From contig NIVC01000067.1 of assembly GCA_002269645.1 (NCBI GenBank), positions 1-64,000 on the forward strand: 64,000 nt of DNA. Reading direction: 5' to 3'. The stretch's first letter is position 1. Each line of letters starts with the position of its first letter. Under the pieces are notes generated by a model. The model was not told the DNA's origin. It saw only the letters and a program-made list of their open reading frames with translations, and ran no database searches. Both the position numbers and the translations under genes were made by a program. Below, in pieces: positions 2,829 to 44,890 of the stretch. The stretch comes from Macrostomum lignano (taxonomy: Eukaryota).

Positions 2829-3489
2829 AGGCAGGGACTTGGCTGCTGCACCAGTTGTTCTTGGTTGCCCTGCAAAAGCGATCTCTAGGGGACGGGCGCG
2901 CCTGATGAAGCGCTGTTGGTCGTGCCTTTGTTGTATTGTTGAATTTGCTCGAGCTGCTGCAGGTTTTGCAGAATATCGTCAAGAAGTTTTTCTTCGCCTT
3001 GAAGCTGCTCCAAAATTCTCTTTTGTGTTCGGGAGAGGCAAGGCCGTCGATCAGTCTCATTGCGATGAGGACGTTTTCCTTGGACTGCTTGGCCCCAAGT
3101 TCCTCGAATTCGCAGAGCGCCGCCGCTGCTCGAAGCCGACGGTAGTAAGTGCTGATCGATTCACCTGGCTCTTGTTTGAGGCTTAGAAATCTGGTGCGCT
3201 CAGCGATGACCAGCCTCTTCTTAGGCCGGATTGTTGCTGTTACTAGTGTCTCGATTTCGCTAAATTTGAGTGCCTCCAGCTTTTTTGGTGCAGCCATCAG
3301 AGAGAGCGTCCGGATCGCCTGTAGTCCAACCTTGGACAGGAACAAGTCAGTTTTATCCCGCACTTTGTCCGTGTCCGTAAGTTTCTTAATGCGGGCCGTG
3401 GCGGAGAGCTGCTGCATCCATGCCTCAGCGAGTTCAGGATCGTTGAGGTTGAGTTCTTGACTCCTAATTTCGCCTGCTTGCGACGCCAT
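2818..3489 (-). CDS. Gypsy gag-like protein (frameshifted at C-terminus, no CCHC knuckle visible)
   Basis: 223-aa ORF with the typical Gypsy gag motif ER..F....Q..GES...Y..RLR..A..CEF. Confidence 0.8.
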   Translation of the reverse strand: MASQAGEIRSQELNLNDPELAEAWMQQLSATARIKKLTDTDKVRDKTDLFLSKVGLQAIRTLSLMAAPKKLEALKFSEIETLVTATIRPKKRLVIAERTRFLSLKQEPGESISTYYRRLRAAAALCEFEELGAKQSKENVLIAMRLIDGLASPEHKREFWSSFKAKKNFLTIFCKTCSSSSKFNNTTKARPTALHQARPSPRDRFCRATKNNWCSSQVPAYAD

Positions 3490-6462: not shown

Positions 6463-9809
<3,347 letters not shown>

Positions 9810-13115: not shown

Positions 13116-13532
13116 TATTTGATCTTTCAGCAAGCTAGTCTGAGAGATATGGATAAGTGACTAGAGATCCATTCTGTTTTGCGTGGGCTATCGAGCCAAT
13201 GAAATTACCAGGTTACTCTAAAATGATGGCAAACATTCATCCGTCATGCATGGAATTGAATTAGCCGTATTTGAAATGCCAGAAGCTTTCTAATTGATGT
13301 AGCCAGGGCACTCAATAGTGTTTTAGTTTGCCTAGAAATCAATTAGCTACCATAGCAGCAAACCTTTCTAGGAACTTATTAAGTCAAGTGCTCCATTCGG
13401 GGGCGTACTGAACTGGTGTACCTCGGTATCTGCTCACAAATTTGCATAAAAAGCAAAATTCCACTCACGGATGCGTCTTCGCTGTCGCTTCACAAAACTG
13501 TATTTTGTTAATTTTATGCAAATAAAATTTTA

Positions 13533-16500: not shown

Positions 16501-18228
16501 TGTTTTTTTCTATGTTTCTCAGCTTCAGGTCCGAGCTCCGTACGCACCGGTTCGGTTCAGACGGTGCAGCTGCCGTTCACCGCCTGCTACCGCATCGAGG
16601 TGCTGGGTGCCGATGGCGGCACAGTAAACGGTAGAAGTGAAGGCAATGGCGCTAAAATGAGCGGCAATTTCAGGCTGACGGCCGGCACAGTTCTGTCTGT
16701 TGTTGTCGGGAAGAGGGGCGGCTACTTAGCATCATCGGCGTTGTCTTCCAGCGCTGGCGGCGGCGGGGGCAGCTTTGTCTACAAGGAGGCCGGCGACACT
16801 CTGCTGCTGGCTGCCGGAGGTGGCGGCGGAGCCAGCAAAGACCGTGATGGTAAGCCTAATTAGCCCCGAGGGACTGGGGATTTGTGAGGCTTGGCCTGCT
16901 GGTTCGGAGAATAAATGAACTGGCGCCAGTTCTGCGGGACTGAGGGCATTGGCGCCAAATCTGAAGGACTGAGGGCATCGGCGCCAAAGCTGAGGGGACT
17001 GAGGGCATCGGCGCCAAATCTGAAGGACTGAGGGCATCGGCGCCAAATCTGAAGGGACTGAAGGCATCGGTGCCAAATCTGAAGGACTGAAGGCATCGGC
17101 GCCAAATCTGAATGGACTGAGGGCATCGGCGCCTAATCTGAATTGACTGAGGGCATCGGCGCCAAATCTGAGGGACTGAGGGCATCGGCGCCAAATTTGA
17201 AGAAACTGAGGGTATCGGCGCCAAATCTGAATTGACTGAGGATATCGGCGCCAAATCTGAGGGACTGAAGGCATCGGCGCCAAATCTGAGAGACTGAAGG
17301 CATCGGCGCCAAATCTGAGGGACTGAGGGCATCGGCGCCAAATTTGAAGAAACTGAGGGTATCGGCGCCAAATCTGAATGGACTGAGGATATCGGCGCCA
17401 AATCTGAGGGACTGAGGGCATCGGCACCAAATTTGAAGGGACTGAGGGCATCGGCGCCAAATCTCAGGGACTGAAGGCATCGGCGCCAAATCTCAGCGAC
17501 TGAAGTCATCGGGGCCAAATCTGAGAGACTGCAGTCATCGGCGCCAAATCTGAGGAACTAAAGGCATCGTCGTTACATCTGAAGGACTGAGGCTGAAGGG
17601 GGGAAATCGGGGCCAAATTTGAAGGGACTGAGGGCATCGGCGCCAAATCTCAGGGGCTGAAGGTATCGGTGCCAAATCTGAAGGACTGAGGGCATCGGTG
17701 CCCCATCCATGAATGCCGCCATCAATCTCAAGCCTGTCCCCAACCGCAGGCGCGGACGGCCAGGCGGGCACCAGCGGAACGAACTCCCAGCCGGACTCGC
17801 ACAACTACAGAGGCTTCGGCGGCTCCAACGGCCAGCCGGGATTCACGAAGACGGACGCGGTGCCCTCGGGTGAGCACCACGGCGGCTCCGGCGCTGGCTG
17901 GCTCGGCGGGCCCAACATGACGCGGCGCAAAGACGAAGACGGAGGTCGCGGCAGCGGCCTCTCGAACAACTGGGTCGGCGGTGAGGCCGGGTCCGGCCAC
18001 GACTACATGGGCGGCTTCGGTGGCGGCGGCGGCGGCGGCTACAAAGGAGCCAGCGGCGGCGGCGGCGGCTACAGCGGCGGCGGAGCCGGGCTGGCCGAAG
18101 GCCTGGCGGGAGGCGGCGGCGGCTCCTACTGCGGCGGCAGCGGCTGCAGCGGCATCACGGGCGGCAACACCAAAACAGGCATCAGTCACGGGTCGGTGAA
18201 GATTACACTGCTGCATGTGCCGTGCTAG
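13533..18228 (+). CDS. Secreted protein: signal peptide + PAN/Apple-like domain + ALK/LTK-type glycine-rich domain (about 420 aa, no TM or kinase)
   Basis: Exons: 13533-13604/13691 (poly-Leu signal peptide; 5' splicing ambiguous, possible mini-exon 13649-13691); 14234(or 14263)-14584 (ECATACMQRGCSVVSL...C, PAN-like); 16529-16849 ([53 protein letters not shown]); 17750-18228 (GGFGGGGGG...GGGGGYSGG...GGGGGSYC...HGSVKIT). The motif set matches the ALK/LTK glycine-rich extracellular domain. Confidence 0.8.
13800..14195. repeat. 20-bp minisatellite (AATGGTCATCGATGGAGCCT)n, intronic
   Basis: About 19 units, each with palindromic CATCGATG. Confidence 0.95.
14665..16470. repeat. 17-bp minisatellite (TATGACCCGATTCTATT / TATGACCCGATTCCATC)n, intronic, 1.8 kb
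   Basis: About 100 units, with variant blocks shifting along the array. Confidence 0.97.
16935..17700. repeat. 29-30-bp minisatellite (GAGGGCATCGGCGCCAAATCTGAAGGACT)n, intronic
   Basis: Directly visible. Confidence 0.95.
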
Positions 18229-25280: not shown

Positions 25281-28200
25281 TTATTCGTCACTGTAAGCCA
25301 GAATTGTGCCCAGCTGCCGCTCGGCTTCATCAACGCTGATGCCCTTGCGACTGGCGTAGTCCTCCACCTGTGCAAGTAGGGGAGAGGTGAGATAGGTGGG
25401 TGAGATGGATGTTGAGATTGGTGAGATAGATTTCAGTTGGGTTGGGATAGATCTGAAATAAGTGGGATGGATTCGAGAAGGGTGAGATATAGATTCGAGA
25501 AAGGGTGAGATAGATTCCAGAAAGGTTGAGATATAGATTCGAGAAAGGGTGAGATAGATTCCAGAAAGGTTGAGATAGATTCCAGAAAGGGTGAGATAGA
25601 TTCCAGAAAGGGTGAGATAGATTCCAGAAAGGGTGAGATAGATTTGAGAAAGGGTGAGATAGATTCCAGAAAGGGCGAGATAGATTCCAGAAATGGTGAG
25701 ATAGATTCGAGAACGGGATGAGATAGATTCGAGAACGGGATGAGATAGATTCCAGAAATGGTGAGATAGATTCCAGAAATGGTGAGATAGATTCCAGAAA
25801 TGGTGAGATAGATTCCAGAAATGGTGAGATAGATTCCAGAACGGGGCGAGATAGATTCAAGAACGGGGTGAGATAGATTCGAGAACGGGGTGAGATTGAT
25901 TCAAGAACGGGGTGAGATAGATTCAAGAACGGGGTGAGATAGATTCGAGAACGGGGTGAGATAGATTCGAGAACGGGGTGAGATAGATTCGAGAACGGGG
26001 TGAGATTGATTCGAGAACGGGGTGAGATTGATTCAAGAACGGGGTGAGATTGATTCGAGAACGGGGTGAGATTGATTCAAGAACGGGTGAGATAGATTCC
26101 AGAAAGGGTGAGATAGATTCCAGAAAGGGTGAGATAGATTCCAGAAAGGGCGAGATAGATTCCAGAAATGGTGAGATAGATTCCAGAAATGGTGAGATAG
26201 ATTCCAGAAATGGTGAGATAGATTCCAGAAATGGTGAGATAGATTCCAGAAATGGTGAGATAGATTCCAGAACGGGATGAGATAGATTCCAGAAAGGGTG
26301 AGATAGATTCCAGAAAGGGCGAGATAGATTCCAGAAATGGTGAGATAGATTCGAGAACGGGATGAGATAGATTCGAGAACGGGATGAGATAGATTCCAGA
26401 AAGGGTGAGATAGATTCGAGAACGGGATGAGATAGATTCCAGAAATGGTGAGATAGATTCGAGAACGGGATGAGATAGATTCGAGAACGGGATGAGATAG
26501 ATTCGAGAAAGGGTGAGATAGATAGATATAACTAGGTGAAATATAACTAGCCAATTTTTGATGTAGAGTACACAGTGAGAAGCAGTTACAGTCAGGAGTT
26601 GAACTCAGACAATCCAGTTTAATAATAATCTGCAGTCGCGGTGGAATCCGCACAGGGCGCGGTGTAACCCGTTCTTATCTCTTTATCTAAAGGAATATTT
26701 GTACGGAAAGTTTCTTCAGCGTACAGTCAGTCAGTAAGTCAGTCACTGTTTTCCAACAGGCGGCCTGTGACAGAGAATTTCTAAGAATCGCGGCGGAAAA
26801 TTCCGGCCAGACGCGTGGCTAAAAATTCACACTTAGCAAGAGCGGGAAGACCCCCGGCCAAACACACGCACTGACCTTCGCTATCAACTGCGTAGAGGGC
26901 ATTCCAAACTTTCTTGTTATAATTTTAACCGAATTTTTTTGCAGGAGCGGTGGAAAACCGGTTTGACTACACGCGGTGGGTTATTTCACCAATAAATTCC
27001 ATTGGAAATAAGGGCAACAAAATTTTGCAAACACTTTTACGCTTACAAGTTTTTTTGCGCCTAACCCCAAAGGTATTATAATTTGAAGAAATTCTAGTTG
27101 CTAAACATTTTGTAATTTGGGTAAGGATTTTAGTGATGACGGGGTTAAGACATCAACTCTCTTCTCACAGTTTCTATGTCTACTTCTCCTACCCTCACTC
27201 TACCTTTCTCCTACCCTCACTCTACCTTTCTCCTACCCTCATTCTACCTTTCTCCTACTCTCACTCTACCTTTCTCCTGCCCTCACTCTACCTTTCTCCT
27301 ACCCTCACTCTACCTTTCTCCTACCCTCATTCTACCTTTCTCCTACCCTCATTCTACCTTTCTCCTACTCTCACTCTACCTTTCTCCTGCCCTCACTCTA
27401 CCTTTCTCCTACCCTCACTCTACCTTTCTCCTACCCTCATTCTACCTTTCTCCTACTCTCACTCTACCTTTCTCCTACCCTCATTCTACCTTTCTCCTAC
27501 TCTCACTCTACCTTTCTCCTGCCCTCACTCTACCTTTCTCCTACCCTCACTCTACCTTTCTCCTACCCTCATTCTACCTTTCTCCTACCCTCACTCTACC
27601 TTTCTCCTACCCTCCCTCTATCTTTATCCTACCCTCATTCTACCTTTCTCCTACCCTCACTCTACCTTTCTCCTACCCTCCCTCTACCTTTCTCCTACCC
27701 TCACTCTACCTTTCTCCTACCCTCACTCTACCTTTCTCCTACCCTCACTCTACCTTTCTCCTACCCTTCCTCTACCTTTCTCCTACCGTCACTCTACCTT
27801 TAAGTACAGCGGCAACCTCTCCCACCCCAGACTCACCTGATCCTTCTCAATCTTGCCAACAGCAAAGTAGTAGGACTGCGGATGCGCCAGGTAGACGCCG
27901 CTGACAGAGGCGGCCGGCATCATGGCCAGAGTGTCGGACAGCTCAATGCCCACCTGCTCAGGCTTGGCCAGTTCCCACAGTGTCCGCTTCTCAGTGTGGT
28001 CCGGCTGCGACGGGTAGCCCGGGGCCGGCCGGATGCCGTCGTAGCTGCAAAATTTCCAGCGGGATCAGAAACTGGGTCAGGTGGGATCAGAAACTGGGTC
28101 AGCGGGATCAGAAACTGGGTCAGGTGGGATCAGAAACTGGGTCAGGTGGGATCAGAAACTGGGTCAGGTGGGATCAGAAACTGGGTCAGGTGGGATCAGA

Positions 28201-31200
28201 AACTGGGTCAGCGGGATCAGAAACTGGGATTAGCAACCCAGATCTCTCACCGCTGCCTGAGCAGTTCCTGCGTTGCGTCGGCGCTCAGATTGTCAATCTC
28301 TGTCGCGGTTGCGGCCTCCGCGCCACCTTCAGCGTAGCCCCACAGTCGGTGGCGCACCAGTAGGTGCATCCTCTCGGCCAAGGCCTCGGCCAGGCGGTCG
28401 GCCAGGGCCTTGGCCATGATGCTGTTGTAGTCATCGCTGGCAGCCTCGAATTCAGCGCACAGCTGGTCGCAGCCGAGGCCGGCGGTGACGGCGAAAACGC
28501 CGACGTAGTCGAGCGGCTCGGCACCGGACTCGGGCGGGCCTGGAGAATAGTTTACAGACTATATCCCTTGTGAGAAGATCTACCTGTGCCGTCTAGGCAA
28601 GTCAAATACGAGTACCATCTTCATCTTCTTTATCGACGAAGATCATAATAGACAGAATCTTTCAATCAGAAATATCCCCTTACAGATAGAAATCCCAACA
28701 ATCCGAAATATCCCCTTACAGATAGAAATCCCAACAATCAGAAATATCCCCTTACATATAGAAATCCCAACAATCCGAAATATCCCCTTGCAGATAGAAA
28801 TCCCCACAATTAGAAATATCCCCTTACAGATAGAAATCCCCACAATTAGAAATATCCCCTTGCAGATAGAAATCCCCACAATTAGAAATATCCCCTTGCA
28901 GATAGAAATCCCCACAATCAGAAATATCCCCTTGCAGATAGGAATCCGCACAATCAGAAATATCCCCTTGCAGATAGAAATCCCCACGATTAGAAATATA
29001 TATCCCCTGACAGATAGAAATCACCACAATCAGAAATATCCCCTTGCAGATCTAGAAATCCTAAAATAAGAATCGACCTCAAACAATTCGATACTTCCAT
29101 ATTTCCCAATAATCCTCCTAATCAGGATAATATCCTATCTAGGCAGAAATCCCCGAAAATAATTCCCCCACCCGGCACTAACCTGGCCGCACAAAGTCGC
29201 TGATAGAGGCGCAGGAGTCGTGCTGCTCTCGCACGGCCTGCTGTCGGAGGCCACGCAGGCAGGCCAGCCGGTCGCTTGAGTCGCCCTCCGGCTTAGTCAG
29301 CACAATGTCGTCGCCTTCGGCGTAGGCGGGATAGAAGGCTACGCTGGCGGCGGCTCGGAGCAGCTTCTCTTTGATAATTCTGGCTAGCAGGGCCTGGCAA
29401 TTAGGGGGTGGGGATTTAACATTTAGCCCGATGAAAACAGTACCTAGGCCAAAAAGCGCGACAGAGTTGTTGCAGGTAACACCTGGGTAAAATAGGAAAG
29501 AAGCGACTCTAGACGACTCTAAACGACTAGATGTCTATTGGACAACTTTTTCGAGACTATTTTAAGATTCTACAACTCACGTGATGCGCTCAGTCGTTTG
29601 AGTCGCTAAAGTCACAAGAGTTGCCTTGGAATTGCTAGAGGTCAACTAGTGAATTGTTTGTTTGCCATCACTCTTTAGCAGTTCTTGTCACAGTAACGTT
29701 TTTAATCAGGGGGTCGGCGAACTTATTTACCACAAGGGCCAGATAAAGAAACCAGCTCATGGCTGCGGGCCAGGTGAGAGAGGAAAAGAGAGGGAAAACG
29801 AGCTCGTAGAAAATAAGAGATTAGAGAACAGAGGAGAGAAGAGGGGAGACAGGAGAGGGGAGAATGAAGGGAAAGAGGGGAAAAAGGAGAGAAGATGGGA
29901 GACAGGAGAGGAGAGAGGAAAGAGAAGGGGGAGAGGGGAAAGAGGAGATAATAGAGGGGAGGAGAGAGGAGAGGGGAGAGGAGAGAGGAGACGAGAAGGG
30001 AGAGGGAAGAGAGGGATGGGAGAGGAGAGAGGAGAGAGGAGAGGGGAGAAGGGATAGAGGAGAAAAGAGAGGAGAGGGGAGAGTGGAGAAGGAAGAGGGG
30101 AGAGAGAGGAGAGAGGAGAAAGGACAGGAGAGAGGGGAGAGGAGAGAGGGGAGAGGAGAGAGGAGAGAGGAGAGGAGAGAGGAGAGGAGGGAGAGGAAAG
30201 AGGGGAGAGGAGAGAGGGGAGAGGAGAGGAGAGGGGAGAGGAGAGAGGGGAGAGGAGAGAGGGGAGAGGAGAGAAAAATCTGAAAAGAGACATACATAAA
30301 CATTGAGCGGGCCGTATTACTCTTGTGAAGACTCAAAGGACCGGCTTTGTGGGCCGCATGTGGCCCGCGGGCGTAAAACCTACATGTAGATGCCGAAAAC
30401 CCACATTGGACTTCATCTATGAACCAAAGCAAGGATTAGGACTTCATGGTTGATTAGTTCTCTCACCTGGGCATCGTCGAACACCTGCTTGGCCTGTGCG
30501 CCAACTCTTTCGTCGCGGAAGATGGCCGGATAGCCTCGATTAGGATAGCGGCCGCGAAGCTGCCAGACGTCGAAGAACGGCTTCCAGTCGATGTAGGGCA
30601 GCAGCTCATTGAGGTCCCAGTCGGACCAGTGGCGCACGCCAAGGAAGGTCGGGCGAACTGGTGAGTGGCTGCTCCAGTCAATGACCGGCTTGCGCTGTCT
30701 GGCGTCCTTCAGACTGTAGTAGCGACGCTCCTGTGGGTAAGCAGCAGGAGTAACTATGTCTGTCTTACAAAAGCCAAATGCCTCGTCATCTAAATAGACT
30801 TAGTTTCCTATATCGTACTGGGTAAACAGCAGGAGTAACTATGCCTGTCTGCTATAGTTAAAATGCCTCGTCACCTAGTTGTACTAGCACTAAACAGCAT
30901 GTAAAAAAGATCAGAATGTACTTTTATTCATACCTGCAGTCCGGCATAGTGCTCATCCCGAATAACAGCGTACTCTTCGGCCGTTTCCTCCGCAAAGTCC
31001 AAGCTCATCTGACTATCTAGCAGGGCTCCGACAACCACAACAGCTTTAGAAGCGTCGGCCACGTGCACAACTGGCGAGGTAGTGTAGCGGGGTGCAATTT
31101 TCACAGCCGTGTGCTGCCGGCTGGTGGTTGCACCGCCAATTAATAGAGGAATTGTCATGCCGCAGCGTTGCATCTCTCTGAAAATTGTGTACAAAATACA

Positions 31201-32011
31201 AAATTGTTTGTTCTTTTTTATTCCGACAGACCAAATCATAAATGCATCAGGTAAGCAACGGGAGCAACTTGATTGTTAACAGATCTTAAAGTGCCTCGTC
31301 AGCTTATTAGAATAATCAAATCACATACTTCGGGTAAGCAGCGTGAGTAACTATGACTGTAAACAGATACTAAAGTGCCTCGGCATCTTATTAGGACAGA
31401 TTGCAGCACGTTGTTGGGTAAGCAGCGAGAGCAACTTTGACTGCAAATGGACACTAAAGTGCCTCGTCATCTTATAATTCAATGCAATGCTTGCAAAAAC
31501 TCCATCTTACCTAGCAACGTGAATCATTTCATCTAGCGACGGAGTGATTAATCCGGACAGGCCAATAATGTCGGCCCGCTCGCTCATCGCCGCCTCTAGA
31601 ATCCGTTCGCACGGCGTCATAACGCCGAGATCGACCACTTTGTAATTATTGCAGCCAAGCACCACCGACACAATATTCTTGCCAATGTCGTGCACGTCGC
31701 CCTTCACTGTCGCCATAATCACGGTCCCGGCGTACTTTGGCTGGCCATCGTCTTCCACTCCGCTGCTGGCGCAGGCGGCGAGCCGCTCAGCCTCCATAAA
31801 TGGCACCAGATGGCCCACGGCCTTCTTCATCACCCTGGCCGATTTGATCACCTGCGGCAGGAACATCTTGCCAGAGCCGAACAGATCGCCTACTATGGAC
31901 ATGCCGCGCATCAGGGGGCCTTCGATTATGTGCAGCGGTCGCGAGTATCTGGGCGAGGCAAAAGGTAATTAGCTGGTTACAGCTGGGGTGATGGACTGTA
32001 TGGGTAGGCAC

Positions 32012-32050
<39 letters not shown>

Positions 32051-32053
32051 CTA

Positions 32054-32086
<33 letters not shown>

Positions 32087-32115
32087 CTAAGACAGACAGA
32101 CACTAAGACAGACAT

Positions 32116-32184
<69 letters not shown>

Positions 32185-32233
32185 GAGACAGATAGAAAGA
32201 CAGACAGACAGACACTAAGACAGACAGACACTA

Positions 32234-32294
<61 letters not shown>

Positions 32295-32357
32295 CTAAGA
32301 CAGACAGACAGACAGACAGACACTAAGACAGACAGACACTAAGACAGACAGACACTA

Positions 32358-32390
<33 letters not shown>

Positions 32391-32442
32391 GCCAGGCAGG
32401 CAGGCAGACAGACAGACAGATAGACAGACAGACAGGATACTA

Positions 32443-32519
<77 letters not shown>

Positions 32520-32590
32520 GGACACTAAGACAGACAGACAGACAGATAGACAGACAGGACACTAAGACAGACAGACAGATAGATAGATAG

Positions 32591-32624
<34 letters not shown>

Positions 32625-32712
32625 AGATAGACAGACAGATAGAAAGACAGACAGACAGACACTAAGACACACAGACAGACAGACAGACAGACACTAAGAC
32701 AGACAGACAGAC

Positions 32713-32747
<35 letters not shown>

Positions 32748-32854
32748 TAGACAGACAGACAGACAGATAGAAAGACAGACAGACAGACAGAGGCAGACAG
32801 ACAGACAGACAGACAGACAGATAGACAGACAGACACTAAGACAGACAGACAGAC

Positions 32855-32885
<31 letters not shown>

Positions 32886-35800
32886 TAGACAGACAGACAG
32901 ACAGATAGAAAGACAGACAGACAGACAGAGGCAGACAGACAGACAGAAAATACGGACACTGAAACAGTCCTACTCACTTCTCCGTGCAGAGCCTGGCCTC
33001 TTCAACGTCCTGCACCACGAACCGGTCGATACCGTGCACCAGCGCGTGCTCCAGCCGGGTCTCCACGTCGCCGGAGCGCCAGGCCTCGGCGGCGGGGTCC
33101 TCGTCCCGACGGCCGCCCGGACCAGCCTGGAGGCTCTGGGCGTACGTCAGCATCCGCTCGGTGGCTTCCGGTCGTCTATTGAGAATGAGATCCTCGCAGA
33201 GCTCCAGCAGGTCGGGCTGGATGTCGCTGTATAGCGGCAGACAGCCGGCATTGACGATGCCCATGTCCATGCCTGCGGCGATGGCGTGGTACAGGAACAC
33301 CGAGTGCATGGCCTCCCTCAGGCTGTCCTTGCCGCGGAAGCTGAAGCTGAGATTGGAGACCCCGCCGCTGACCCGGGCGCCCGGCAGGGTGGATTTGATA
33401 AACCGGCAGGCGCCGATGAAATCCATGGCGTAATTATTGTGCTCGTCCATGCCGGTGGCGATGGTCAGGATGTTCGGGTCGAAGATGATGTCGTTCGGAT
33501 TGAACTTGATCTGCAGCCGGTCATCAATTATTGTTTATGACAGCTATTAATAAGCTTACCGAATGCGATTAGTGCCACAAACAATAGACTACAAACTGCC
33601 CACCGATCCAAAACTACGTGATATCCGAATTCTGAAATCTTGAAATCTACCTAAAATACCATCCTAAACCTACCTAAACTAGCATCCTAAATCTACCTAA
33701 ACTAGCATCCTAAATCTACCTAAACTAGCATCCTAAATCTACCTAAACTAGCATCCTAAATCTATCTAAACTAGCATCCTAAATCTATCTAAACTAGCAT
33801 CCTAAATCTATCTAAACTAGCATCCTAAATCTACCTAAACTAGCATCCTAAATCTATCTAAACTAGCATCCTAAATCTATCTAAACTAGCATCCTAAATC
33901 TATCTAAACTAGCATCCTAAATCTACCTAAACTAGCATCCTAAATCTATCTAGACTAGTATCCTAAATCTACCTAAACTAGCATCCTAAATCTATCTAAA
34001 CTAGCATCCTAAATCTATATAGACTAGTATCCTAAATCTACCTAAACTAGCATCCTAAATCTATCTAAAATACCATAATAAATCTACCTAAGCTAGCATC
34101 CTTAATCTACGAGTACCTAAATTACGACCTTAAATCTACCTAAAAAGTCCTAAAACTACCTAATTTACGATCCTAAATCTACCTAAAAAACTACCTTAAT
34201 CTAATTAAAAATCTATCTAAAATACCATTCAAAAATACCTATAATACCACCTTAAGTCTATTCAAAATACCATCTTTAAATCCATCAAAACTATTCTAAA
34301 CATATCTAAAGTTACCATGAAGCAAGCTACCACCTGAAACCACCCTAAGCTACCATCTCAAGCATCAATATCGCTTGAAAGGATTCCAGATCTCATAGAC
34401 TTGTCCTTATACGCTAACTAGAGCCACAGAGTCACATCCACTATTTGAGCATCACCTTCTCTGTTAGCAACCGATACGAGCGCTGGCAGATCTCCACCTT
34501 CCTATCCAGATCAGCCGCCTGGCCCTGCTCGTCAAATGCCATGACAACAACGGCGGCGCCGTATCGTTTAACAAGCGACGCTTTGCGCAAGAAATCGTCT
34601 TCGCCTTCCTTCAGGCTGATGCTATTGACGATGCATTTGCCCTGGCAGCAGCGGAGGCCGGCTTCGATAATCTCGAAATTTGACGAATCAATGCACAGAG
34701 GCAGCACAGCGACGTCGGGCTCGGAGGAGATCAGGTTGAGAAAGCGGGTCATGCAGGCCGGCCCATCCAGCATGCCGTCGTCAACGTTCACGTCCAGCAC
34801 CTGTTTTGTATGGGGTTTGGGTGTGGTATGGGGGCGATTCTGGGTGTGGTATGGGGGCGATTCTGGGTGTGGTATGGGGGCGATTCTCGATGTGGTATGG
34901 GGGCGATTCTGGGTGTGGTATGGGGGCGATTCTGGGTGTGGTATGGGGGCGATTCTGGGTGTGGTATGGGGGCGATTCTGGGTGTGGTATGGGGGCGATT
35001 CTCGATGTGGTATGGGGGCGATTCTGGGTGTGGTATGGGGGCGATTCTGGGTGTGGTATGGGGGCGATTCTCGATGTGGTATGGGGGCGATTCTGGGTGT
35101 GGTATGGGGGCGATTCTCGATGTGGTATGGGGGCGATTCTCGATGTGGTATGGGGGCGATTCTGGGTGTGGTATGGGGGCGATTCTGGGTGTGGTATGGG
35201 GGCGATTCTGGGTGTGGTATGGGGGCGATTCTGGGTGTGGTATAGTGGGGATTCTGGGTGTTGTATAGTGGGGATTCTGGGTGTGGTATGGGGCGATTCT
35301 GGGTGTGGTATAGTGGGGATTCTGGGTGTAGTGGCGATTTTTAATGTCATAATAGGGATTTTACACTAACAGATTAGCCCTAGTAACACAATAAATGACG
35401 AAACAAAGGAAACTGAGCTGTCTCACCTGGGCTCCATTCTCCACCTGCTCCTTAGCCACACTAAGTGCCTCATCAAACGCGTTAGTCTTAATTAAGCGGC
35501 AAAACTTCCTACTGCCAGCCACGTTGCAGCGCTCGCCAATATTGAGAAAATTCGTCTCCTTAGTAACAATGCTGGCCTCCAGGCCTGACAACACCAGAGC
35601 ATTGGGGTGCGGATTTGGCCGAGTTCGCGGCATGTGCGGCCTCACAGCCTTGGCGATGGCGCTGATGTGAGCCGGTGTGGTGCCGCAGCAGCCGCCAACC
35701 AGATTGACCAGGCCGTCCTTGGCGAAGGTCTCCAAATTGGCGGCCATCATAGCCGGGGTCTCATCGTATTCGCCGAACGTGTTTGGCAGGCCGGCATTGG

Positions 35801-37596
35801 GGTAGCACAGCACGTAGGCCGGGGTGGCCAGGCCCAGCCTCTCGATGAAGGGCCGCATCTCGGAGGCGCCGAGGGCGCAGTTCAGGCCGAGGCAGAGCGG
35901 CCGGCCATGGGAGACGCTGGCTACGAAAGCCTCGGTGGTCTGGCCGGACAGTGTCCGACCGCTGCGGTCCACAATGGTGCCGGACACAAGCAGGGGGACA
36001 CGGTCGTAGGCGCCAGAGTCGAATAGCGACTCAATGGCAAAGATGGCCGCCTTGGCGTTGGCGGTGTCGAAGATTGTTTCTACTAGGAGCAGATCGGCTC
36101 CTCCGTCAAGCAGACCGCGAGTCTGTTTGGTGTTTTTTCATTTGTTTAAATTATTGCTAGAAAGACGCGAATTTTATGCTTGCCTAGCACAAGTTTTACA
36201 GGCTTCGAACCAAGGACTAGTTAAAGTAGTAGAGCGGGAAGCTACTAAGTTTCTTGGAGAATTCTAGGAGGGTTTTACCGAAACAATACACTACTGACAA
36301 TGGAGGCTTTCACTATCATACATGCGATTATGATCCCGCCGGCTGGCGAGGGTCCCAGCCAAAAAAAGTCGCAAAATGCCTACCCGAAAAAATACAGGCT
36401 TTAGTACTTAATAGACTACGAGGCATTTAGCCTTAATAATACAGTCATAGTTACTCTTTTCGTTTACCCATAGTACGTTAATTTTAGCTTTTAAAGGTAA
36501 TCCACACGGCCGGTGTGAATCAGGGGGTTGCGCATGTTCATTATCATAGGGTCCTAATTTACTGAACAAAAAGCTTTGCGAATCTCAATAGAGCTATAAA
36601 GATGAGCATTAGGTCTGTTTGCTATCAATGGCAACAGCAAATTTTGTGCTAAAAAATAAAAATCTCCATTCTTGGTAAAGTAAAGTAGTTTCGCAACCAT
36701 CTACTTTGACCTTGACCCCCCGAAATTACCTGGTCAGAGTAGGCCTCAACGAGCTGTTCAAATGTAATATTGCGGTAGTCTGGCCGCTCCACTGAGGGCG
36801 AGATGGACAGAGTGCGGTTGGTCGGGCCCAGGGCGCCAGCTACAAAGCGGGGCCGGGCCGGGAGACCGGCGGCTAAGTCGGCGGCTTCGATGTCGTCGCA
36901 GGCTCGCCTAGCGATGCGGGCGGCCTCGGCGTTGAGGCGGTAGGCCAGGTGAGAAAGGTCATAGTCCGCCTGGGCGATCGACGTAGCTGAGAATGTGTTG
37001 GTCTCGATAATATCGGATCCGGCGGCCAGGTATTGCTGCCAAGTGGGTGGAGCGATTCAGTTGTGACAGCTTAAAGGATGATGTTGATGTTCCATGGCTC
37101 AAGGGGGATGCTGAGGTGCCATGGCTCAAGGGGGATGCTGAGGGCCATAGCTCAAGGAGGATGCTGAGGGGCCATAGCTCAAGGGGGATGCTGAGGGGCC
37201 ACGGCTCAAGAGGGAAGGCTGAGGGGGCCACGGCTCAAGGGGGATGCTGAGGGGCCCCAGCTCAAGGGGGATGCTGAGGGGCCATGGCTTAGGGGGAAGC
37301 TAAGGTGCCATGGCTCAAAGGGAAGTTTCTAAGATAGTTAACATTACATTGAATGTATATACAATAAGTAAATAACATTGAAATTATACCTTGTGAATGT
37401 TATAAACTGCATCTGGCTTGACAAGAGTCAGCAAATCATTGTTGCCCTTTAGGGACTTTGAATGTTGGGCAAATTCTTCTCCACGAAAATCATTCTCTTC
37501 AAGATGTAGCTGCTGAACCATGGTGCCCATGGCACCATCCATGATAAGGATGCGCTCTTGCAAGGCATCTTCTAGCATTTTTGATACTTTGCCCAT
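25281..37596 (-). CDS. MTR: Cobalamin-dependent methionine synthase (about 1275 aa, 12 coding exons)
   Basis: Exons (-): 37596-37390, 37035-36730, 36122-35427, 34800-34456, 33510-32978, 31948-31511, 31177-30934, 30730-30467, 29393-29183, 28539-28251, 28044-27837, 25367-25281. All GT-AG and phase-consistent, 3828 nt. Motifs: [26 protein letters not shown] (Zn/Hcy), [10 protein letters not shown], pterin domain [14 protein letters not shown]12 motif [11 protein letters not shown] and GLSGLITPS, AdoMet domain [14 protein letters not shown]. Confidence 0.97.
25425..26525. repeat. 21-bp minisatellite (GAGATAGATTCCAGAAAGGGT)n in MTR intron 11
   Basis: Directly visible. Confidence 0.96.
26678..26760 (+). 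mobile_element. Possible 5' end of a non-autonomous Helitron
   Basis: A|TCTCTTTATCTAAAGGAATATTTG followed by a CAGT microsatellite, resembling Helitron-N 5' ends. No convincing 3' hairpin-CTAG end was found. Confidence 0.25.
27180..27800. repeat. 22-bp pyrimidine-rich minisatellite (CTCCTACCCTCACTCTACCTTT)n in MTR intron 11
   Basis: Directly visible. Confidence 0.96.
28062..28228. repeat. 21-22-bp minisatellite (GGGATCAGAAACTGGGTCAGGT)n in MTR intron 10
   Basis: About 8 units filling most of the intron. Confidence 0.95.
28655..29050. repeat. 36-bp minisatellite (AGAAATATCCCCTTACAGATAGAAATCCCCACAATT)n in MTR intron 9
   Basis: About 11 units. Confidence 0.95.
29707..30402 (+). mobile_element. 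hAT/Charlie (MER58-like) MITE with internal purine-rich expansion, in MTR intron 8
   Basis: Left end CAGGGGGTCGGCGAACTTATTTACCACAAGGGCCAGATA...GCGGGCCA resembles MER58-type ends; subterminal GGCCCGCGGG near 30362; right TIR degenerate. Shares ATAAACATTGAGCGGGCCG with the copy at 43703-44085. Confidence 0.7.
30735..30882 (+). repeat. Two tandem 28S rRNA-derived 63-bp units (helix 69 / R2 insertion-site region) in MTR intron 7
   Basis: Copy A 30735-30797 matches 53/63 and copy B 30820-30882 matches 45/63 to the conserved eukaryotic 28S segment GGGTAAACGGCGGGAGTAACTATGACTCTCTTAAGGTAGCCAAATGCCTCGTCATCTAATTAG (hand alignment to a remembered consensus). Confidence 0.85.
31249..31478 (+). repeat. 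Three tandem 28S rRNA-derived units (about 84-bp period) in MTR intron 6
   Basis: Copy C 31249-31310 (one deletion), copy D 31332-31394 (48/63), copy E 31416-31478 (42/63) against the same 28S segment. Confidence 0.8.
32010..32946. repeat. (GACA)n microsatellite in MTR intron 5
   Basis: Directly visible. Confidence 0.97.
33660..34260. repeat. 23-bp minisatellite (CCTAAATCTACCTAAACTAGCAT)n in MTR intron 4, decaying rightwards
   Basis: Directly visible. Confidence 0.93.
34810..35330. repeat. 23-bp minisatellite (GGGTGTGGTATGGGGGCGATTCT)n in MTR intron 3
   Basis: Directly visible. Confidence 0.96.
36407..36469 (-). repeat. Inverted 28S rRNA-derived unit (copy F) in MTR intron 2
   Basis: Reverse complement GGGTAAACGAAAAGAGTAACTATGACTGTATTATTAAGGCTAAATGCCTCGTAGTCTATTAAG matches 47/63 ungapped to the 28S segment. 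Confidence 0.8.
37085..37320. repeat. 27-bp minisatellite (CCATGGCTCAAGGGGGATGCTGAGGGG)n in MTR intron 1
   Basis: About 8-9 units. Confidence 0.93.
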
Positions 37597-40500
37597 AATT
37601 TTTTTCAATCCTGAAATCATTTAAAATGATTTGGCTTTTAGTCAAAAATAAAAAAAGAAATTTATTATGTATATTTCTATAATTAAAAATGTTGTAACTA
37701 ACAAAATACCTTGAATAAAACCTTGATTATATTACACATGGTTTTGATATAAAAAGCAGTAGTACTTTAATTTTCATGCCTACTAAATTTAAACTGGTTG
37801 AATGAAGCTATAATAACAAATACTAAAGATAAAAATAAAATCAATGATAATATAGGCTTACCTAGGATTCATTTATAAACATACTTATAAATTAGTCAAT
37901 TAAAAAATAAAGAATAATTACTATTTAAGATAGGGCATAAGGCCAGGGATGCAAGAATATTGAAATTTCTATAGTCTTGGACACATACTAGAATAACTAG
38001 ATAGGCGACTCAGCACATTTGTCTGCCAACTACTTTCAGTACAATAATAAGTTAAACTGAAACAGTTTAATATGATTTTTAAAGACAAGGCTCACTTATT
38101 GGCTCTTAAGCTTAAACTTTAAAAACCTTTAAACTACATATTTGGTTTGATAATTTGATAATTTTTGGTTATGGTTGAAGATTACTGATTAATTAAAACT
38201 TTGATTTATCACAGTGCCTCTATGCTTCAATCATTTGCTTTAAAATTTTTATTATTTTTTATACATGTCTTAGCTTTGCAATGACACTTAGACGAATGAT
38301 TGTCTTTTATATTTTTAAGGGATATTTGCTCTGGCGTCAGATTAGGCCCACTGGCCTAAGGAATGTATCCCGAAACAGGAATTCATTTTTTGCTTGAATT
38401 ATCCGTTTAAAGGAGAAAAAAATCTGCCGGGAAACCCAACATGTAATATACACTAATCTGTTTAGTTAATCGATTTAGAAAAAAACAAAAAGATCTAATA
38501 AATAAAGTTGAATGGAACAAGATATCAGTTTTGTAGTCCAAACTTCAAACAAGACAATACATCGTCGTCACTCGTCAGTTCATAAATAAAAAAGAAACAT
38601 ACAAAAATTCTGTTAATTGGCTTACCTAATGTCCTGAGCGAGAGTACTTCTAATTTAGGAATTCGAAAAATAATAAAAACAGACGGTGTTAAGACCACTT
38701 ATATATGTATGAAGCCTTATGATATTGTACGACCATACAACAAACCACGTGGGAGACATATATATAGGCGACAGTTCCTAGAATTAATATGGGCAACAGT
38801 ATTAACAAATAAATAACTCTCATCTGTATCAAAAGAAAGTAAGTATAAGTATAGTAGACGCGCTTTAAACTAAAATAAAAAATAGGTTAAAACACAAAAA
38901 CACCTACGTAAGAAACAGTTAAGAAAATTACAACGAGGTGCTAACTTTTCTTGGACAGTCCGCGTCGATGACAACCATTTCAATTTCTAACAGCGTGAGT
39001 AGTGTTGTGACTGTGTTGCTGTATAACGTACACAGTGTATGAGACATATTTGCATCCACTGAATTATGCAACGTTTCTATTCACTCTGATTATATCTCTT
39101 AATGGGATCTCGCTTTATAGTGAAAGATGTCGCAATTTATAGGGGAGGTTGAACATATGTCATCCAGACCAGTCTTCACACACAAACCGGTTGAGTTCTG
39201 TCGAACAGGTTGAGCAGGAAAAATCGACGATTTTATTAGAAACCAATTACTGGCCCTCTATTTGTTACAGTGGAACGCGTCAATTCTGATTGGCTGAGCC
39301 GATTCGTGTAAACGGACGTGGAATTCTCTGATTCGCTGGGCTTATTGCTACAAATCGTCAAAAAGGGCCCGGAGAACCCTCAGAAAGTGACAGTTCGATC
39401 ATAAATCATCCCATTTCTGTACAATTGATTGAAGAATTTCAGCCACGCCAAAGTTCAAAAATATAAATATCCAAAAATATATACATGAACATGTGGGTAC
39501 TGCATTGATTGGGGATGAAAAGCAGAGTGCAATGAGATATTCTGTGAGAAGATTAGGATTGAAACAAATATACTTCTCAAGGACTACTCAAACTGTTTGA
39601 GTAGTCCCTGATACTTATTTCAAAATATCTTCACGCTTGGAAAAATCCAAAATAATAGCCAACCAATCTCATACCGTAATGGATGATGGCCTGGCAAAAT
39701 AAGAGAAAAAGTGCTTGTCACGTAATTTTCCCAGACCATCTGGCGCCTGTATACTCTCAGGTCTGCATGCCAGGTGGCCGCCTAAAACCTTAAAAATCTG
39801 ATTATCTATGAGTCAAAAGTGTACTGCATGGTATAGCTAGAATCCCAATAGAAAGGGAAAAAAGCATGAAAGAGAGATAAAATAAAAATTAATTACAACG
39901 AGGGTATAGTAGACAAAGGATAATTGCTGGGAAGGGAGAGGGAGAAAGAATGGGAAAGATAAGAGAAAATGCATGTCTACTGGCAGTAGTCGGTACAGTA
40001 CAGGGGAGCAAAACTCAATAGTTTAAAAACACGGTTCAACATAAGGAAATTTAGCAAAGCATATGTACATGGTGTGCGTGTAAGTTCACCGACGACATTA
40101 GTAGCGCAAGCGAAACCGCTAAATGGAGTTTCGCCATAGACAAATCGGTCATTGACAAACTCTCCACGCTAGAGACAGAAACAACTAAAACTTTGCCGGA
40201 ACTTGCTTGCAGTTCATGAAAAATAGCTTGATATCATGAACATCTTGCTAAAAGTACATATCTGGAATTTCCAGTTTATTTACCAGATGTTTCGCGTTTC
40301 GTATAAAATATTTCTGGAATTGACAGGAACTGGAATTGACAGGGCGGTTGGCATATCCAAGCTATTCTTTTGCTGGGATAGAATTTTCAACCTGAGCACT
40401 GCTGCTATTGCAAACGGTATGTATGTATTTATCTGGGCGTACATTTGCATAGAGTTTTGTTAACTTATAAAATTTACGGCATGAATAAGCATGTACAATG

Positions 40501-41369
40501 ATGAATATGCCGCTGAATATTTGATGAGGTCATGCAGGGAGGTACCACTGTGCTTAGCTGACTTTCACGCTAAGTGATGGATGGTAGGCTAATGCAGATT
40601 TTGAATAGGCTGCCTACTGAAACATGATTCAGCAAAAAACTATCTATACTAAGCAGAACTTGAATTTCCCAAAATAGGCCTGAAGGTCTTGGCAAGTTAG
40701 GGCTAAATCAATCAAGTATGCAAGTAGATTGGCAGGTCCGCACATTCACCCGTTTTTCTGCTAGACATTCTATAGCTGACGCACTGTGCTTTCATTTATT
40801 CAAGTAGTGTGGGCGTTGCTAATCTACCTTGGATTCCTAGAAAAATGCTAATTAAGGTAGCTGTCAGCGAATTCCTCTTAAGTTTTGCTACTCAAGCTCT
40901 TATTTCAGCGTAGACAATGGAAAATTGGATTGCAAAACCTTGAGATCTAATTGCCAGGTTGTTTAACAGTACGCGATGTGAGCACAATAGAAAGGAAAAA
41001 TTCAACTAGACAAGGAAACTCACAGCTAATTGAAGGAATTTCTATCGTTAGCCAGGACAAAATGCAGTAAGGCTTTCACAGGACCAAAAATTCTCATTGC
41101 CTGAGAAGTTTTGGACCTGAACTTTTTTCCATTTCGGCGAGACCGACGGGTCCCCCTGCATGAGCGGCACCACTTCGATGGAATTGTCTTTGACCACCGG
41201 GGGCTAGCGGAATGGGCAGTCTCCACCGCAAAAATAAGGGCTTCGAATTCTACAAATGACGCTCGTACTTCTAGACTAAGAATTGCATAATCTATATAAA
41301 CATAGATCCATTCGTGAGATATTCAGCTTAGCTTTCGGTTTTTTAGAACATTGAACTGGTTCAATCTCG

Positions 41370-41725
41370 CCTTCTTAGTATATGCGCTTTGTCCAGGGCC
41401 GTAGTGCAGCAGCCCAGGCTCGATTCCAAGTGCATTCACATTAATTTAAGGCTAAATTGGAATCTTGGCTTGGCTCTGCTCGTGCAATTAACGCTTTTGA
41501 GGGCCAACCCCAAAGGCACAGTGAAGTGTACATGTTTAACGATAAATAAAGTTAGGGCCGCTGTACACTCCTGTGTGAGTGTGCACCTGTGAGTACGACT
41601 GCATACGTATCCTTGAGCTCGTGTGCCTGCTAAGGGGAGTCGGCGGAATGGGCAGTAATGCCTCTCGCCGGCTGTGTGACAATGTCGCTTTAGGTTTGCC
41701 AGGGTGCACACAGCCCCTGCCTCTA
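41370..41725 (+). mobile_element. SINE-like element, family 2 (diverged copy)
   Basis: Box-B-like GGCTCGATTCC at 41417. Central block GCTGTACACTCCTGTGTGAGTGTG...GGAGTCGGCGGAATGG...GACAATGTCG is shared with copies at about 46.1, 53.2 and 62.7 kb. Confidence 0.5.
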
Positions 41726-42478
41726 ACGAAAAATGCTCTTTGTCCAATGTCAATTCACATACTTCTCAATGTACTTTTTAGAAATGGGAGAAGCAAGCAA
41801 GCAAAGCTGCAGAGAAGTTTCAATCGTCCCAATGCACTCCGCATCGGCCCAATAATTGGCTTCGGCGAAGTCTTCGAAAGATGCTTAACCAAATTTGCAC
41901 GTTTGATTGACCGCAAAACTTGGGCGGTAGCTGACTTGAAGTTGGGTCTCGCTGCCATCGATGTAAAATAAGACCAAAACTGTGAAAATGATCAACCTCA
42001 AAATAGTGAGTCGATATACGACTCGTGCATGTGTATTGGACATTTGACATGTACATTATACATCTACTTTCAACCAGGCAACATGGCAATTCGTCTTGGT
42101 TATTATTCCGCAGTTGCTCGCCATGTACTTTTACCCCATGCCCGCATTTTATCACGTGACAGCTTTCCCATCTTTATAATTTATCCACCCCAGCTTATAA
42201 CTGTATTAGCGTGAAATAAGTGTAGAATAATGACAACTGTGCTGGGAAAATTATGCATAAAATGCACATGTTCAGAACAATTCATCATTGTACGGGCATA
42301 AGTGGGTAACTATAGACACGGGCGAGTACCCAACCTATTTCCAAATACCATTCCCAAAGCGTCTTTTTTCCTGACGGGTTATCCCAGACAGAGTTTCGTC
42401 TATGGTAAAACACAGCTTCGCGGTATGCAAAGAGCCAACCTTTGTGACAACCGATTAGAGGGCCCAACTGTTTCGCCG

Positions 42479-43020
42479 ATCTTCAATAGTCCTCTTTTCA
42501 AACTTGAGTGGCTCAACTCATTAATAAATCTAAGATAAAATGCGTAACTGCTCGATCTTCAATAGTCCTCTTTTCAAACTTGAGTGGCTCAACTCATTAA
42601 TAAATCTAAGATAAAATGCGTAACTGCTCGATCTTCAATAGTCCTCTTTTCAAACTTGAGTGGCTCAACTCATTAATAAATCTAAGATAAAATGCGTAAC
42701 TGCTCGATCTTCAATAGTCCTCTTTTCAAACTTGAGTGGCTCAACTCATTAATAAATCTAAGATAAAATGCGTCACTGCTCGATCTTCAATAGTCCTCTT
42801 TTCAAACTTGAGTGGCTCAACTCCTCAATCAATCTCAGATAAAATGCGTCACTGCTCGATCTTCACTAGTCCTCTTTTCAAACTTGAGAGGCTCAACTCC
42901 TCAATCAATCTCAGATAAAATGCGTAACTGCTCGACCTTCAATAGTCCTCTTTTCAAACTTGAGTGGCTCAACTCATTAATAAATCTAAGATAAAATGCG
43001 TAACTGCTCGATCTTCAATT
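42479..43020. repeat. 76-bp tandem repeat, about 7 copies
   Basis: Unit ATCTTCAATAGTCCTCTTTTCAAACTTGAGTGGCTCAACTCATTAATAAATCTAAGATAAAATGCGTAACTGCTCG; near-identical copies. Confidence 0.96.
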
Positions 43021-43702
43021 CCAAAGTTCAAAAGTTGAGATGCTACAACGAAATTTGCACGATTTCGAGCGTAACGCGAATTGACTTTAAAACTCCAGCG
43101 ACCAGTCTTCATCTATCCTAAATACTCAGAGTATCGACAATGTAGAAACCAGTTGTGAAACAGTGCCATTTCCACGTGTGGCAATTAGTGGCTTCTCATC
43201 AGATATTCGGCACAGTCTCCATAAGCTGAGCTTTCTGTATACAATTCATCGGTCGGAAAATCCTCTTTTAAGCAGCCGGTCGCTTCAGCGCCGCGCATTC
43301 ATCATACTTTAATGAGAGAAGGCATTTTGCCAACCCAATCTTTAGAGACTCACTGTTGATAAAGCTGCCAGCTCTGTCAGAGCGCTGCTTCCTAGCATCT
43401 GTCTGAGTGTTCATTGTGCTGCAGAATCTTTTATTTACTAGACAAAAATGGTTCTAGACAACTGATTGCTATAAGAATTTTTGGCTAGCAGTTTAGCTAT
43501 TTTCCTACAAAATTTAAAAATAGCTGCTTTGGCAATAGTAGAGTTGTTACCATACAGACCTGCCTGCTAAATGTAGCTCGTAGACATCAAGCTCTGTGTG
43601 TTGTCGATTTTTGATCAAGTTAAATTTTACTACTCCAATTGTATTCAAATCATTTCTGCGTTTACACAATCAGCGCACATTCTACAGTTTTATGGCCAAA
43701 GC

Positions 43703-44085
43703 CAAAGATCGGTAAAGTTTTTCACCTGGATGGATGGATGGATCATCTAGCACATGACCACAGGAGGGGAGAGAGGAGAAGGAATAGAGAAGAGGAGAGA
43801 GGAAAGACAAGAAGAAAGAAGAGAAGAGAAGGGAGAGGACAGAGAGGAGAGAGAACAGAGGACAGAGGACAAAGGACAGAGGAAAGAGGAGAAGAGAGGG
43901 GATAGAGGAGAGAAGAAAGGAGAGGAGAGAAGGGAGAGAAGAGGAGAGAAAAGAAAGAGAGTGGGGACTAGAGGGAAGGGAGCTGAGAAGAGATATAAAC
44001 ATTGAGCGGGCCGGATTGCGACTAGGGAATTGGACCCGAACAGAAAGGCTTCGCTGACCCACGGGTCGGAGTTTGCCGACCCCTG
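43703..44085 (+). mobile_element. hAT/Charlie (MER58-like) MITE with internal purine-rich tract, second copy
   Basis: Right TIR GTTTGCCGACCCCTG (44071-44085); degenerate left TIR CAAAGATCGGTAAAG; flanking 8-mers GCCAAAGC / GCCTTAGC (6/8) consistent with an 8-bp TSD. Confidence 0.7.
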
Positions 44086-44589
44086 GCCTTAGCCTTGGTA
44101 TGCGTGCGCAAGAAAACAACAAAAACTTACTAAAAACAACACACCGCTACGTTCTAGCTCGTATCATATTGATGAAGCGCCCACAGAAGATTCGTTATGT
44201 TTTCACTACGTCTGTCTGAATTCCAAGGGCTCTTTCATTGATTTTCAGCGGCAAGACAATTAATGCAAAAAACAATGTTTGGAGTAGGCAAGTCAGCATG
44301 CGGAGAGGCGCAGCTGGTGCTAGTCCAAAGACTTATGCGGGAGTTTAAAAATGTCGTCATCTGTGACAATGCCGGTTCATTAAAACAAGCGCAAATCTTA
44401 CAGCCAAGAGACTCCATTGTGCAGCTGAGTGCCTGCAAGCTATGCAACTCTTCCATACTCCACTTATTTAATTATTCAAGCGCTGCAAACTATTCAGAGA
44501 AGCGTCGCATCAAAATCGCATGGCAGGTTTGCTATAAGCATTTGGGAGTAGCTACGCAAAGCTGAGCTAATACCGGATGCGTCTCCATC

Positions 44590-44605
44590 GATTGGCTGGC
44601 CAATC
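44590..44605. promoter_or_regulatory. Inverted pair of CCAAT boxes about 290 bp upstream of the large mosaic gene
   Basis: Palindrome GATTGGC-TG-GCCAATC. A promoter role is inferred from position only. Confidence 0.35.
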
Positions 44606-44890
44606 AGGACCTCACATCAGGACCGCGCAAGCAGTTTGTAGTTGCTAATGGCAATGCTATGCCTTGAAAACACTAGCCACGCTAGGAGTCCGTCCCTCCG
44701 ATAGCATTTCAGTGCCTGCTATATACAGCAAAGAATACATTTTCTCTTTAAAAACTAAAATCTCATTTTTACAGCTATAGAAATTCAGCTACAGACAGAG
44801 GACACTACATGGAGTGGTTGTCTTGAGCAATTATTTGCACCTCAAACGTGATTTCTACTCCTACTATACACGCATTATAGAAAGTACCAT

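Follow-up and report, generated by a model that had tools for sequence, protein, structure and literature searches.

The methionine synthase (MetH/MTR) gene of Macrostomum lignano contains in its introns a set of short repeats resembling helices 69 to 71 (H69-H71) of 28S ribosomal RNA (rRNA), and it is likely that these derive, some as copies and some as tandem remnants, from a small cut-and-paste transposon, a miniature inverted-repeat transposable element (MITE), that captured about 63 bases of the 28S rRNA gene. Six of the repeats (A-F) are in a 64,000-nucleotide stretch of contig NIVC01000067.1 of assembly GCA_002269645.1 (positions 1 to 64,000, the whole of which is referred to here as the window), and a seventh (G) is in a second M. 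lignano copy of the locus on contig NIVC01003831.1 (about 32 kb, designated L004; the window copy is L005). Copy G lies inside a discrete insertion with perfect terminal inverted repeats (TIRs) and copy F inside an older, decayed one, and the remaining five are arranged as short tandem arrays in introns 6 and 7.

The repeats were located by searching the window with blastn and nhmmer, using a 264-nt 28S reference and the 84-bp R2 target duplex; the reference was checked against that published duplex (taken from an R2 structural paper). There are exactly six matches to the H69-H71 segment, each about 63 bp long, with identities to 28S of 69-84% and E values from 1e-13 to 2e-4, which bears out the match of about 67-84% that an earlier note on this DNA had estimated by hand alignment. 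The gene that contains them has a spliced product 100% identical to M. lignano PAA49610.1. The features are as follows, with positions referring to the window unless L004 is specified.

25281-37620 (-): cobalamin-dependent methionine synthase (MetH/MTR) gene, 12 exons, all GT-AG, 1283 aa
30731-30933 (-): MetH intron 7, 203 nt, GT-AG, nearly all of it units X, B and A
30735-30797 (+): core copy A, 84% identity to 28S, E 1.8e-13
30820-30882 (+): core copy B, 77-80% identity to 28S
30888-30921 (+): unit X, third in the intron 7 array and decayed, seen in the L004/L005 alignment and as a weak nhmmer match at L004:16739-16719
31178-31510 (-): MetH intron 6, 333 nt, GT-AG, about three-quarters filled by units E, D and C
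31249-31311 (+): core copy C (blastn match 31250-31310), 69-71% identity to 28S, within the Tandem Repeats Finder (TRF) period-84 array
31332-31394 (+): core copy D, 77-78% identity to 28S
31416-31478 (+): core copy E, 72-74% identity to 28S
36407-36469 (-): core copy F, 75% identity to 28S, E 9e-9
L004:13696-13758: core copy G, the seventh, from the second M. lignano copy of this locus, 85% identity to 28S

The earlier note had described five units with a period of 83-85 bp between 30735 and 31478 and an inverted sixth copy at 36407-36469, and both are recovered here. The units are found by blastn and nhmmer; TRF detects 2.7 copies of a period-84 repeat at 31250-31475, and the spacing between A and B is 85. 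The sixth copy is indeed on the minus strand. The assignment of C, D and E to intron 6 and of A and B to intron 7 was also correct, and copy F is located in intron 2 (36123-36729). MetH is transcribed from the minus strand, which puts copies A-E in the antisense orientation to 28S in the pre-mRNA and copy F in the sense orientation. A search of the window with a 16-mer from the core finds seven sites where shuffled sequences predict 0.83, these being the six copies and one chance-level site with three mismatches (18529), and a hidden Markov model (HMM) built from the six copies finds no further match in the 64 kb.

The similarity to 28S ends at essentially the same positions in all six window copies (reference positions 70-134 by blastn), the one departure being copy F, where nhmmer stretches the match weakly by about 15 nt upstream. 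There is no rRNA flanking the copies and no Rfam large-subunit (LSU) rRNA match in the window, so that, taken together with the common end positions, the copies are isolated fragments and not parts of a longer pseudogene; homology running on into longer rRNA sequence was looked for and not found, as the earlier note had maintained. All of the copies have a C to G change at core position 28 (CTC to CTG), a shared derived state that had also been noticed before, and the derived states and boundaries together support a single diverged 28S-derived repeat as the common source, and not independent rRNA pseudogenes. The best-conserved blocks of the core are GGGTAA, GAGTAACTATGACT and AATGCCTCGTCA, in which six or seven of the seven copies match 28S in each column. 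Copy G is the closest of all to 28S and is 81-84% identical to A, B and F.

The nature of the carrier is clearest in L004, which is 91-100% identical to the window and contains all six copies in addition to G. Copy G lies within a 293-bp block (L004:13589-13881) that is not present in the window and that interrupts the 23-bp minisatellite of MetH intron 4; the same minisatellite in the window is an uninterrupted array and constitutes the empty site. The block starts with CATACATGCGCAAC and finishes with GTTGCGCATGTATG, a 14/14 inverted repeat (L004:13589-13602 and 13868-13881), and is bordered on either side by TTTAGGAT. Removal of the block together with exactly 8 bp restores the phase of the minisatellite, giving 23/23 matches at a lag of 23, whereas every other offset gives 4-9/23. 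The inverted repeats and the 8-bp restoration of phase thus show a cut-and-paste insertion with an 8-bp target-site duplication (TSD), which occurred after the two gene copies diverged, and the element is accordingly polymorphic, being present in L004 and missing from the same intron of the window copy. Inside its ends are subterminal repeats (TCGGCCGA, AAGTCGCAWWWWTG), comprising three 9-mers of the TCGGCCG type and four motifs of the AAGTCGCA type, in direct and inverted orientations and typical of transposase-binding arms, and an arm hairpin formed by GCAAAAATGCC and GGCATTTTGGC, the latter derived from 28S. We note also that L004 is a mosaic, being 99.5-100% identical to window 34910-43801 (the 5' part and upstream) and about 91-92% identical to 25398-33829 (the 3' part), which could reflect recombination or conversion between alleles or between homeologues in M. 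lignano, a hidden polyploid.

Copy F lies in an element of the same type in a more degraded state. The corresponding features in the window are these.

33643-34187: 23-bp minisatellite of intron 4, uninterrupted, the empty site for element G
36309-36316: left TSD of F, TTCACTAT, 7/8 match to the right copy
36317-36536 (-): decayed MITE copy holding F, of which 123 bp (window 36366-36485) align to G at 79%, E 4e-22
36537-36544: right TSD of F, TTCATTAT

Besides the core, the alignment of F and G takes in flanking sequence that is not 28S, about 18 bp of it on the upstream side and about 45 bp on the downstream side. The ends of F are CATACATGCG and GTTGCGCATG, which keep 10/14 and 11/14 of the TIR bases, respectively; in the right TIR the outer TATG has been lost or altered. 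A 12-nt direct repeat (TTCACTATCATA and TTCATTATCATA, 92%) flanks the element, and the arm hairpin is present as in G (GCAAAATGCCT and AGGCATTTAGC). Element F is common to both gene copies and is therefore older than their split. At 220 bp for F and 293 bp for G, each is too short for a transposase open reading frame (ORF). As a separate observation, the 28S-derived GGCATTT(T)GGC pairs in both MITE copies with an arm motif, GCAAAA(A)TGCC, located 39-42 nt away (L004:13658-13668 and 13711-13721; window 36371-36381 and 36421-36431), and the GCATTTTTG motif occurs again in the other arm; the captured piece of rRNA thus resembles the element's own subterminal repeats, and this may be a reason for its retention.

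The arrays have the core in common with F and G, along with its boundaries, the derived substitutions and about 10 nt on each side, with a flank consensus of ACGTACT before the initial GGGTAA of the core and of TACTA after its terminal TAG; no recognizable TIRs or arms are present in A-E. The end of copy A adjoins the 3' splice site of intron 7, with the acceptor (ending in GCTTACCCACAG) 2-4 nt past the core, and the similarity between introns 6 and 7 is 70-80% and confined to the cores. Comparison of the two gene copies shows substitutions at 14/315 core sites, 5/220 sites in other intron DNA and 2/345 exon sites. Unit B accounts for 10 of the 14 core changes (at 10 of its 63 positions) and also has an indel, which may represent an ectopic gene-conversion tract, and A, C, D and E differ at 0-2 positions; in addition there is a 26-bp indel (L004:16704-16729 versus window position ~30900) at which the window copy has been deleted within unit X of intron 7. 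As the cores are no better conserved than other intron DNA and X is being deleted, nothing points to purifying selection acting on the cores at present. No function is indicated for the 28S-like sequence itself.

The likeliest scheme for these observations is one in which the family consists of non-coding class II elements of about 290 bp with 14-bp TIRs (CATACATGCGCAAC) and an 8-bp TSD, for which a transposase of the hAT or P type would be supplied in trans; it is the length of the TSD that indicates these superfamilies. An ancestor of the family would have captured about 63-80 bp of 28S rDNA (H69-H71), the simplest route being the uptake of filler DNA in gap repair or template switching, and the captured piece would then have diverged, as in the change of CTC to CTG at core position 28. 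Element G jumped into the intron 4 minisatellite of one MetH copy after the copies separated, and element F is an older insertion in intron 2, present in both. The closeness of G, the youngest copy, to 28S and to A, B and F is what a position near the master copy of the family would predict. Arrays C-D-E and A-B-X are probably core-only derivatives, formed by tandem amplification of internal segments of old family members, that have lost any terminal repeats and are decaying, and the pyrimidine-rich end of the element would now abut the intron 7 3' splice site. All four independent loci are inside the 12.3-kb MetH gene, with none in the other ~52 kb of the window or in the flanks of L004; the chance of all of them falling in MetH, given the first, is roughly 0.007, and local re-insertion, which is well known for hAT and P elements, is the simplest explanation of the clustering, probably together with local tandem duplication.

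The assignment to a MITE draws on the TIRs, the fixed-length TSD, the small non-coding size and the insertion polymorphism, and several observations weigh against it. The TIR starts with CATAC and not with the YARNG usual for hAT elements. No autonomous partner was found and no matching TIR within two mismatches occurs elsewhere in the window, in which the sole transposase ORF seen is mariner-like. Only F and G show element ends, and with neither TIRs nor arms in A-E the link between the arrays and the MITE depends on the shared core and the ~10 nt on each side. The cores in the arrays are 78-84% alike and the 20-22-bp spacers are at chance level, a contrast not expected from a simple tandem duplication of recent date; it could come from units that had already diverged in a master element or from ectopic conversion between members of the family, at which the burst of changes in unit B hints. 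Finally, within the ~64 kb and the 32-kb second copy, copies are seen only in MetH, and dispersal of the family through the genome is an inference.

The earlier note pointed out that this segment is the target of R2 retrotransposons, and comparison with the published 84-bp R2 target duplex confirms that it is; the question is then whether the copies are landing pads or decoys outside the rDNA for R2, Pokey-like piggyBac elements or I-PpoI-like endonucleases, as the note had proposed. The stretch that would be cut (CTCTTAAGG, followed by TAGCC) is however the least conserved part of the core, with between zero and four of the seven copies matching 28S in each column, and the intact R2/I-PpoI/Pokey site is present in none of the seven; nor does any of them hold an insertion. 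It can be said for a role of this kind that two best-conserved blocks sit upstream and downstream of the cut site, where R2 proteins are reported to contact the DNA, and that a role at the DNA level would allow both orientations of the core. The TSDs of the carrier are nonetheless unrelated to rDNA, the cores show no recent constraint, and the R2 families of planarians and liver flukes are described in the literature as having lost 28S specificity, and we find the landing-pad explanation barely plausible. A related suggestion in the note, of a non-autonomous element built around the R2 target, holds in its first part, given the TIRs and TSD of G and its presence in one gene copy only, and is not supported in its second, given the poor conservation of the cut site. 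The note's further proposal of a short interspersed element (SINE)-like family was not sustained, as the element is class II, with TIRs, a fixed 8-bp TSD and no tail; the hallmarks of a retroposon (absence of TIRs, an A-rich or LINE-derived tail, TSDs of variable length) were not found. The much greater conservation of cores than of spacers in the arrays is the one observation that does point to a segment that is not neutral, the family or the MetH arrays being kept through complementarity or mimicry of the two blocks, via antisense RNAs or as a sink for an R2-type protein. We consider this very improbable; were it true, either intron-derived RNAs antisense to H69-H71 would interact with pre-rRNA, or DNA sites still bound by an R2-type protein would form a sink outside the rDNA for rDNA-specific elements or their proteins.

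Another explanation is that the cores encode intronic small RNAs antisense to 28S H69-H71, acting as guides or chaperones in the manner of small nucleolar RNAs (snoRNAs) and released from MetH pre-mRNA, similar to snoRNA host genes, whose introns each hold one copy or several. On the transcribed strand, five of the six window copies, and G, run antisense to 28S, and all of these are intronic in a single gene; the cores of the arrays are far better conserved than their spacers; and the variable middle of the core lies between two conserved blocks, which cover 2'-O-methyl sites of H69-H71 known from modification maps of yeast 25S and human 28S rRNA. The arrays are similar to intronic clusters of box C/D snoRNAs in being intronic, on the sense strand, with a period of about 84 nt, and in their antisense relation to a portion of 28S that carries many modifications. 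In introns 2, 6 and 7, however, no C-like box on either strand is followed at 40-130 nt by a CUGA D box, and there is no exact UGAUGA in either orientation, and the combination of RUGAUGA and CUGA with a terminal stem that defines a box C/D snoRNA was not found. The complementarity moreover extends over 63 nt and is not a guide of 10-20 nt. There is no Rfam match even at E<=10, other than a chance-level SNORA2-like one, and when units were folded in both orientations there was no fold common to the copies or consistently stable (z-scores of -2.2 to +0.7). Copy F is oppositely oriented, the cores are not favored over other intron DNA in the comparison of gene copies, and two of the copies are demonstrably within a transposon. 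The small-RNA explanation is therefore very unlikely. The Rfam match just mentioned (SNORA2/SNORA34-like, window 36534-36657 on the plus strand, 20.4 bits against a gathering threshold of 70, E=6) begins at the end of MITE copy F, is antisense to MetH, and probably arose by chance. A hammerhead-like reading was also rejected; unit C has a CUGACGA that can be seen by eye, but neither GAAA nor the required arrangement of stems comes after it.

Two further explanations concern how the sequences arrived. Introns 6 and 7 could themselves be recent gains by repeat insertion, similar to introner-like elements, as the units fill most of both short introns, and as the position of intron 6 is not present in three other animal MetH genes, from which most of the intron positions of M. 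lignano MetH differ. Intron 7, however, coincides in position and phase with an intron of L001, a vertebrate-like MTR gene, and is hence old, F and G were inserted into pre-existing introns, and the resemblance of introns 6 and 7 is confined to 70-80% over the cores, such that this origin is extremely unlikely. It is also conceivable that the copies are ordinary rRNA pseudogene fragments or rDNA filler DNA inserted independently several times, given that rDNA and rRNA are abundant donors of filler DNA and that the homology is short and internal; but boundaries and derived substitutions are common to all of the copies, and F and G have in common both TIRs and, next to the core, 60 bp that is not rRNA, and repeated independent insertion is scarcely credible. 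Among these explanations, we favor descent from a MITE with a captured 28S fragment, an ordinary mobile element apart from its unusual passenger.

Comparison with known systems places the M. lignano element among hAT and P MITEs, which it resembles in being small and non-coding, with perfect TIRs, subterminal repeats, an 8-bp TSD, insertion polymorphism and an intronic location, and from which it differs in its TIR (CATACATGCGCAAC), lacking the YARNG start, and in its internal segment derived from 28S rRNA. The arrays have a counterpart in bivalves, in tandem-repeat-containing MITEs and Helentron-borne satellites (DTC84, pearl), where arrays of 1-5 units are dispersed in genes by a non-autonomous element and also occur without recognizable element ends; these belong to another superfamily with another TSD, and their units are not derived from rRNA. 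The Daphnia piggyBac elements Pokey and mPok offer a precedent, in that a repeated module derived from rDNA lies inside a class II element or MITE (Table 2 of a 2024 review of rDNA-derived transposon parts). The Pokey module however comes from the intergenic spacer (IGS) and not from the 28S coding region, and Pokey makes TTAA duplications and targets the same region of 28S, whereas the M. lignano element has 8-bp TSDs that are not rDNA and no targeting of rDNA was seen. The same review lists many elements with parts derived from 5S and, for 28S, only the mammalian SINE28, from the 3' end of 28S; this is a retroposon using another part of the molecule, unlike an element with TIRs and a fixed TSD. 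A fish R2 lineage has likewise acquired a piece of 28S, in the form of a 28S-like 3' UTR (Kojima et al. 2016), but it is an autonomous, site-specific non-LTR retrotransposon in which the 28S piece is linked to target choice, and the M. lignano element shows no such link. We found no description of this repeat in the literature, no match among metagenome contigs or viral contigs to a pattern that fits the repeat but not true 28S, and no copy in three distant animal MetH loci (L001-L003, 63-67% protein identity). A fragment of H69-H71 within a MITE thus appears to be undescribed, mobile elements with captured pieces of rDNA being already known.

Nearly every MetH intron (introns 1-11, window 25368-37389) is dominated by a tandem array of its own, including a 27-mer present 8.6 times, two different 23-mers present 22-24 times, (ACAG)x232, a 36-mer x11, a 22-mer x7.7, AG-rich 7-12-mers and the 84-mer; in intron 2 no tandem array was called, and MITE copy F is located there instead. 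Repeat-filled introns are the rule in this gene and are a striking genome-level habit of M. lignano introns. Elsewhere in the window there is a fragmented Gypsy-like LTR retrotransposon at 316-3489 (minus strand), with ORFs for gag-like, protease, reverse transcriptase, RNase H and integrase-like products in several frames (RT_RNaseH match, E 1e-27). An apparently intact transposase ORF of the mariner/Tc1 type (Transposase_1, DDE_3, HTH_Tnp_Tc3_2) is at 12246-13160 (plus strand); its nearest relatives, 72-82% identical, are on short Logan/ENA contigs, and the collection has no annotated M. lignano protein for it. Also on the plus strand are a DYRK-like kinase gene (7902-9809), a gene for a glycine-rich protein (16564-18228) and a large multi-exon gene with repeated WSC and C-type-lectin-like domains (44000-63300).

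For annotation, these findings guard against mislabelling such sequences as rRNA pseudogenes, snoRNAs or R2 landing pads, since what looks like rRNA in a housekeeping gene is here a transposon passenger. A fragment of the 28S coding region joins the short list of rDNA pieces carried inside mobile elements, and the 293-bp element, TIRs included, can serve directly in searches for the rest of the family and for its autonomous partner. For M. lignano, a regeneration model with a repeat-rich and poorly catalogued genome, it provides a dated case of recent class II transposition.

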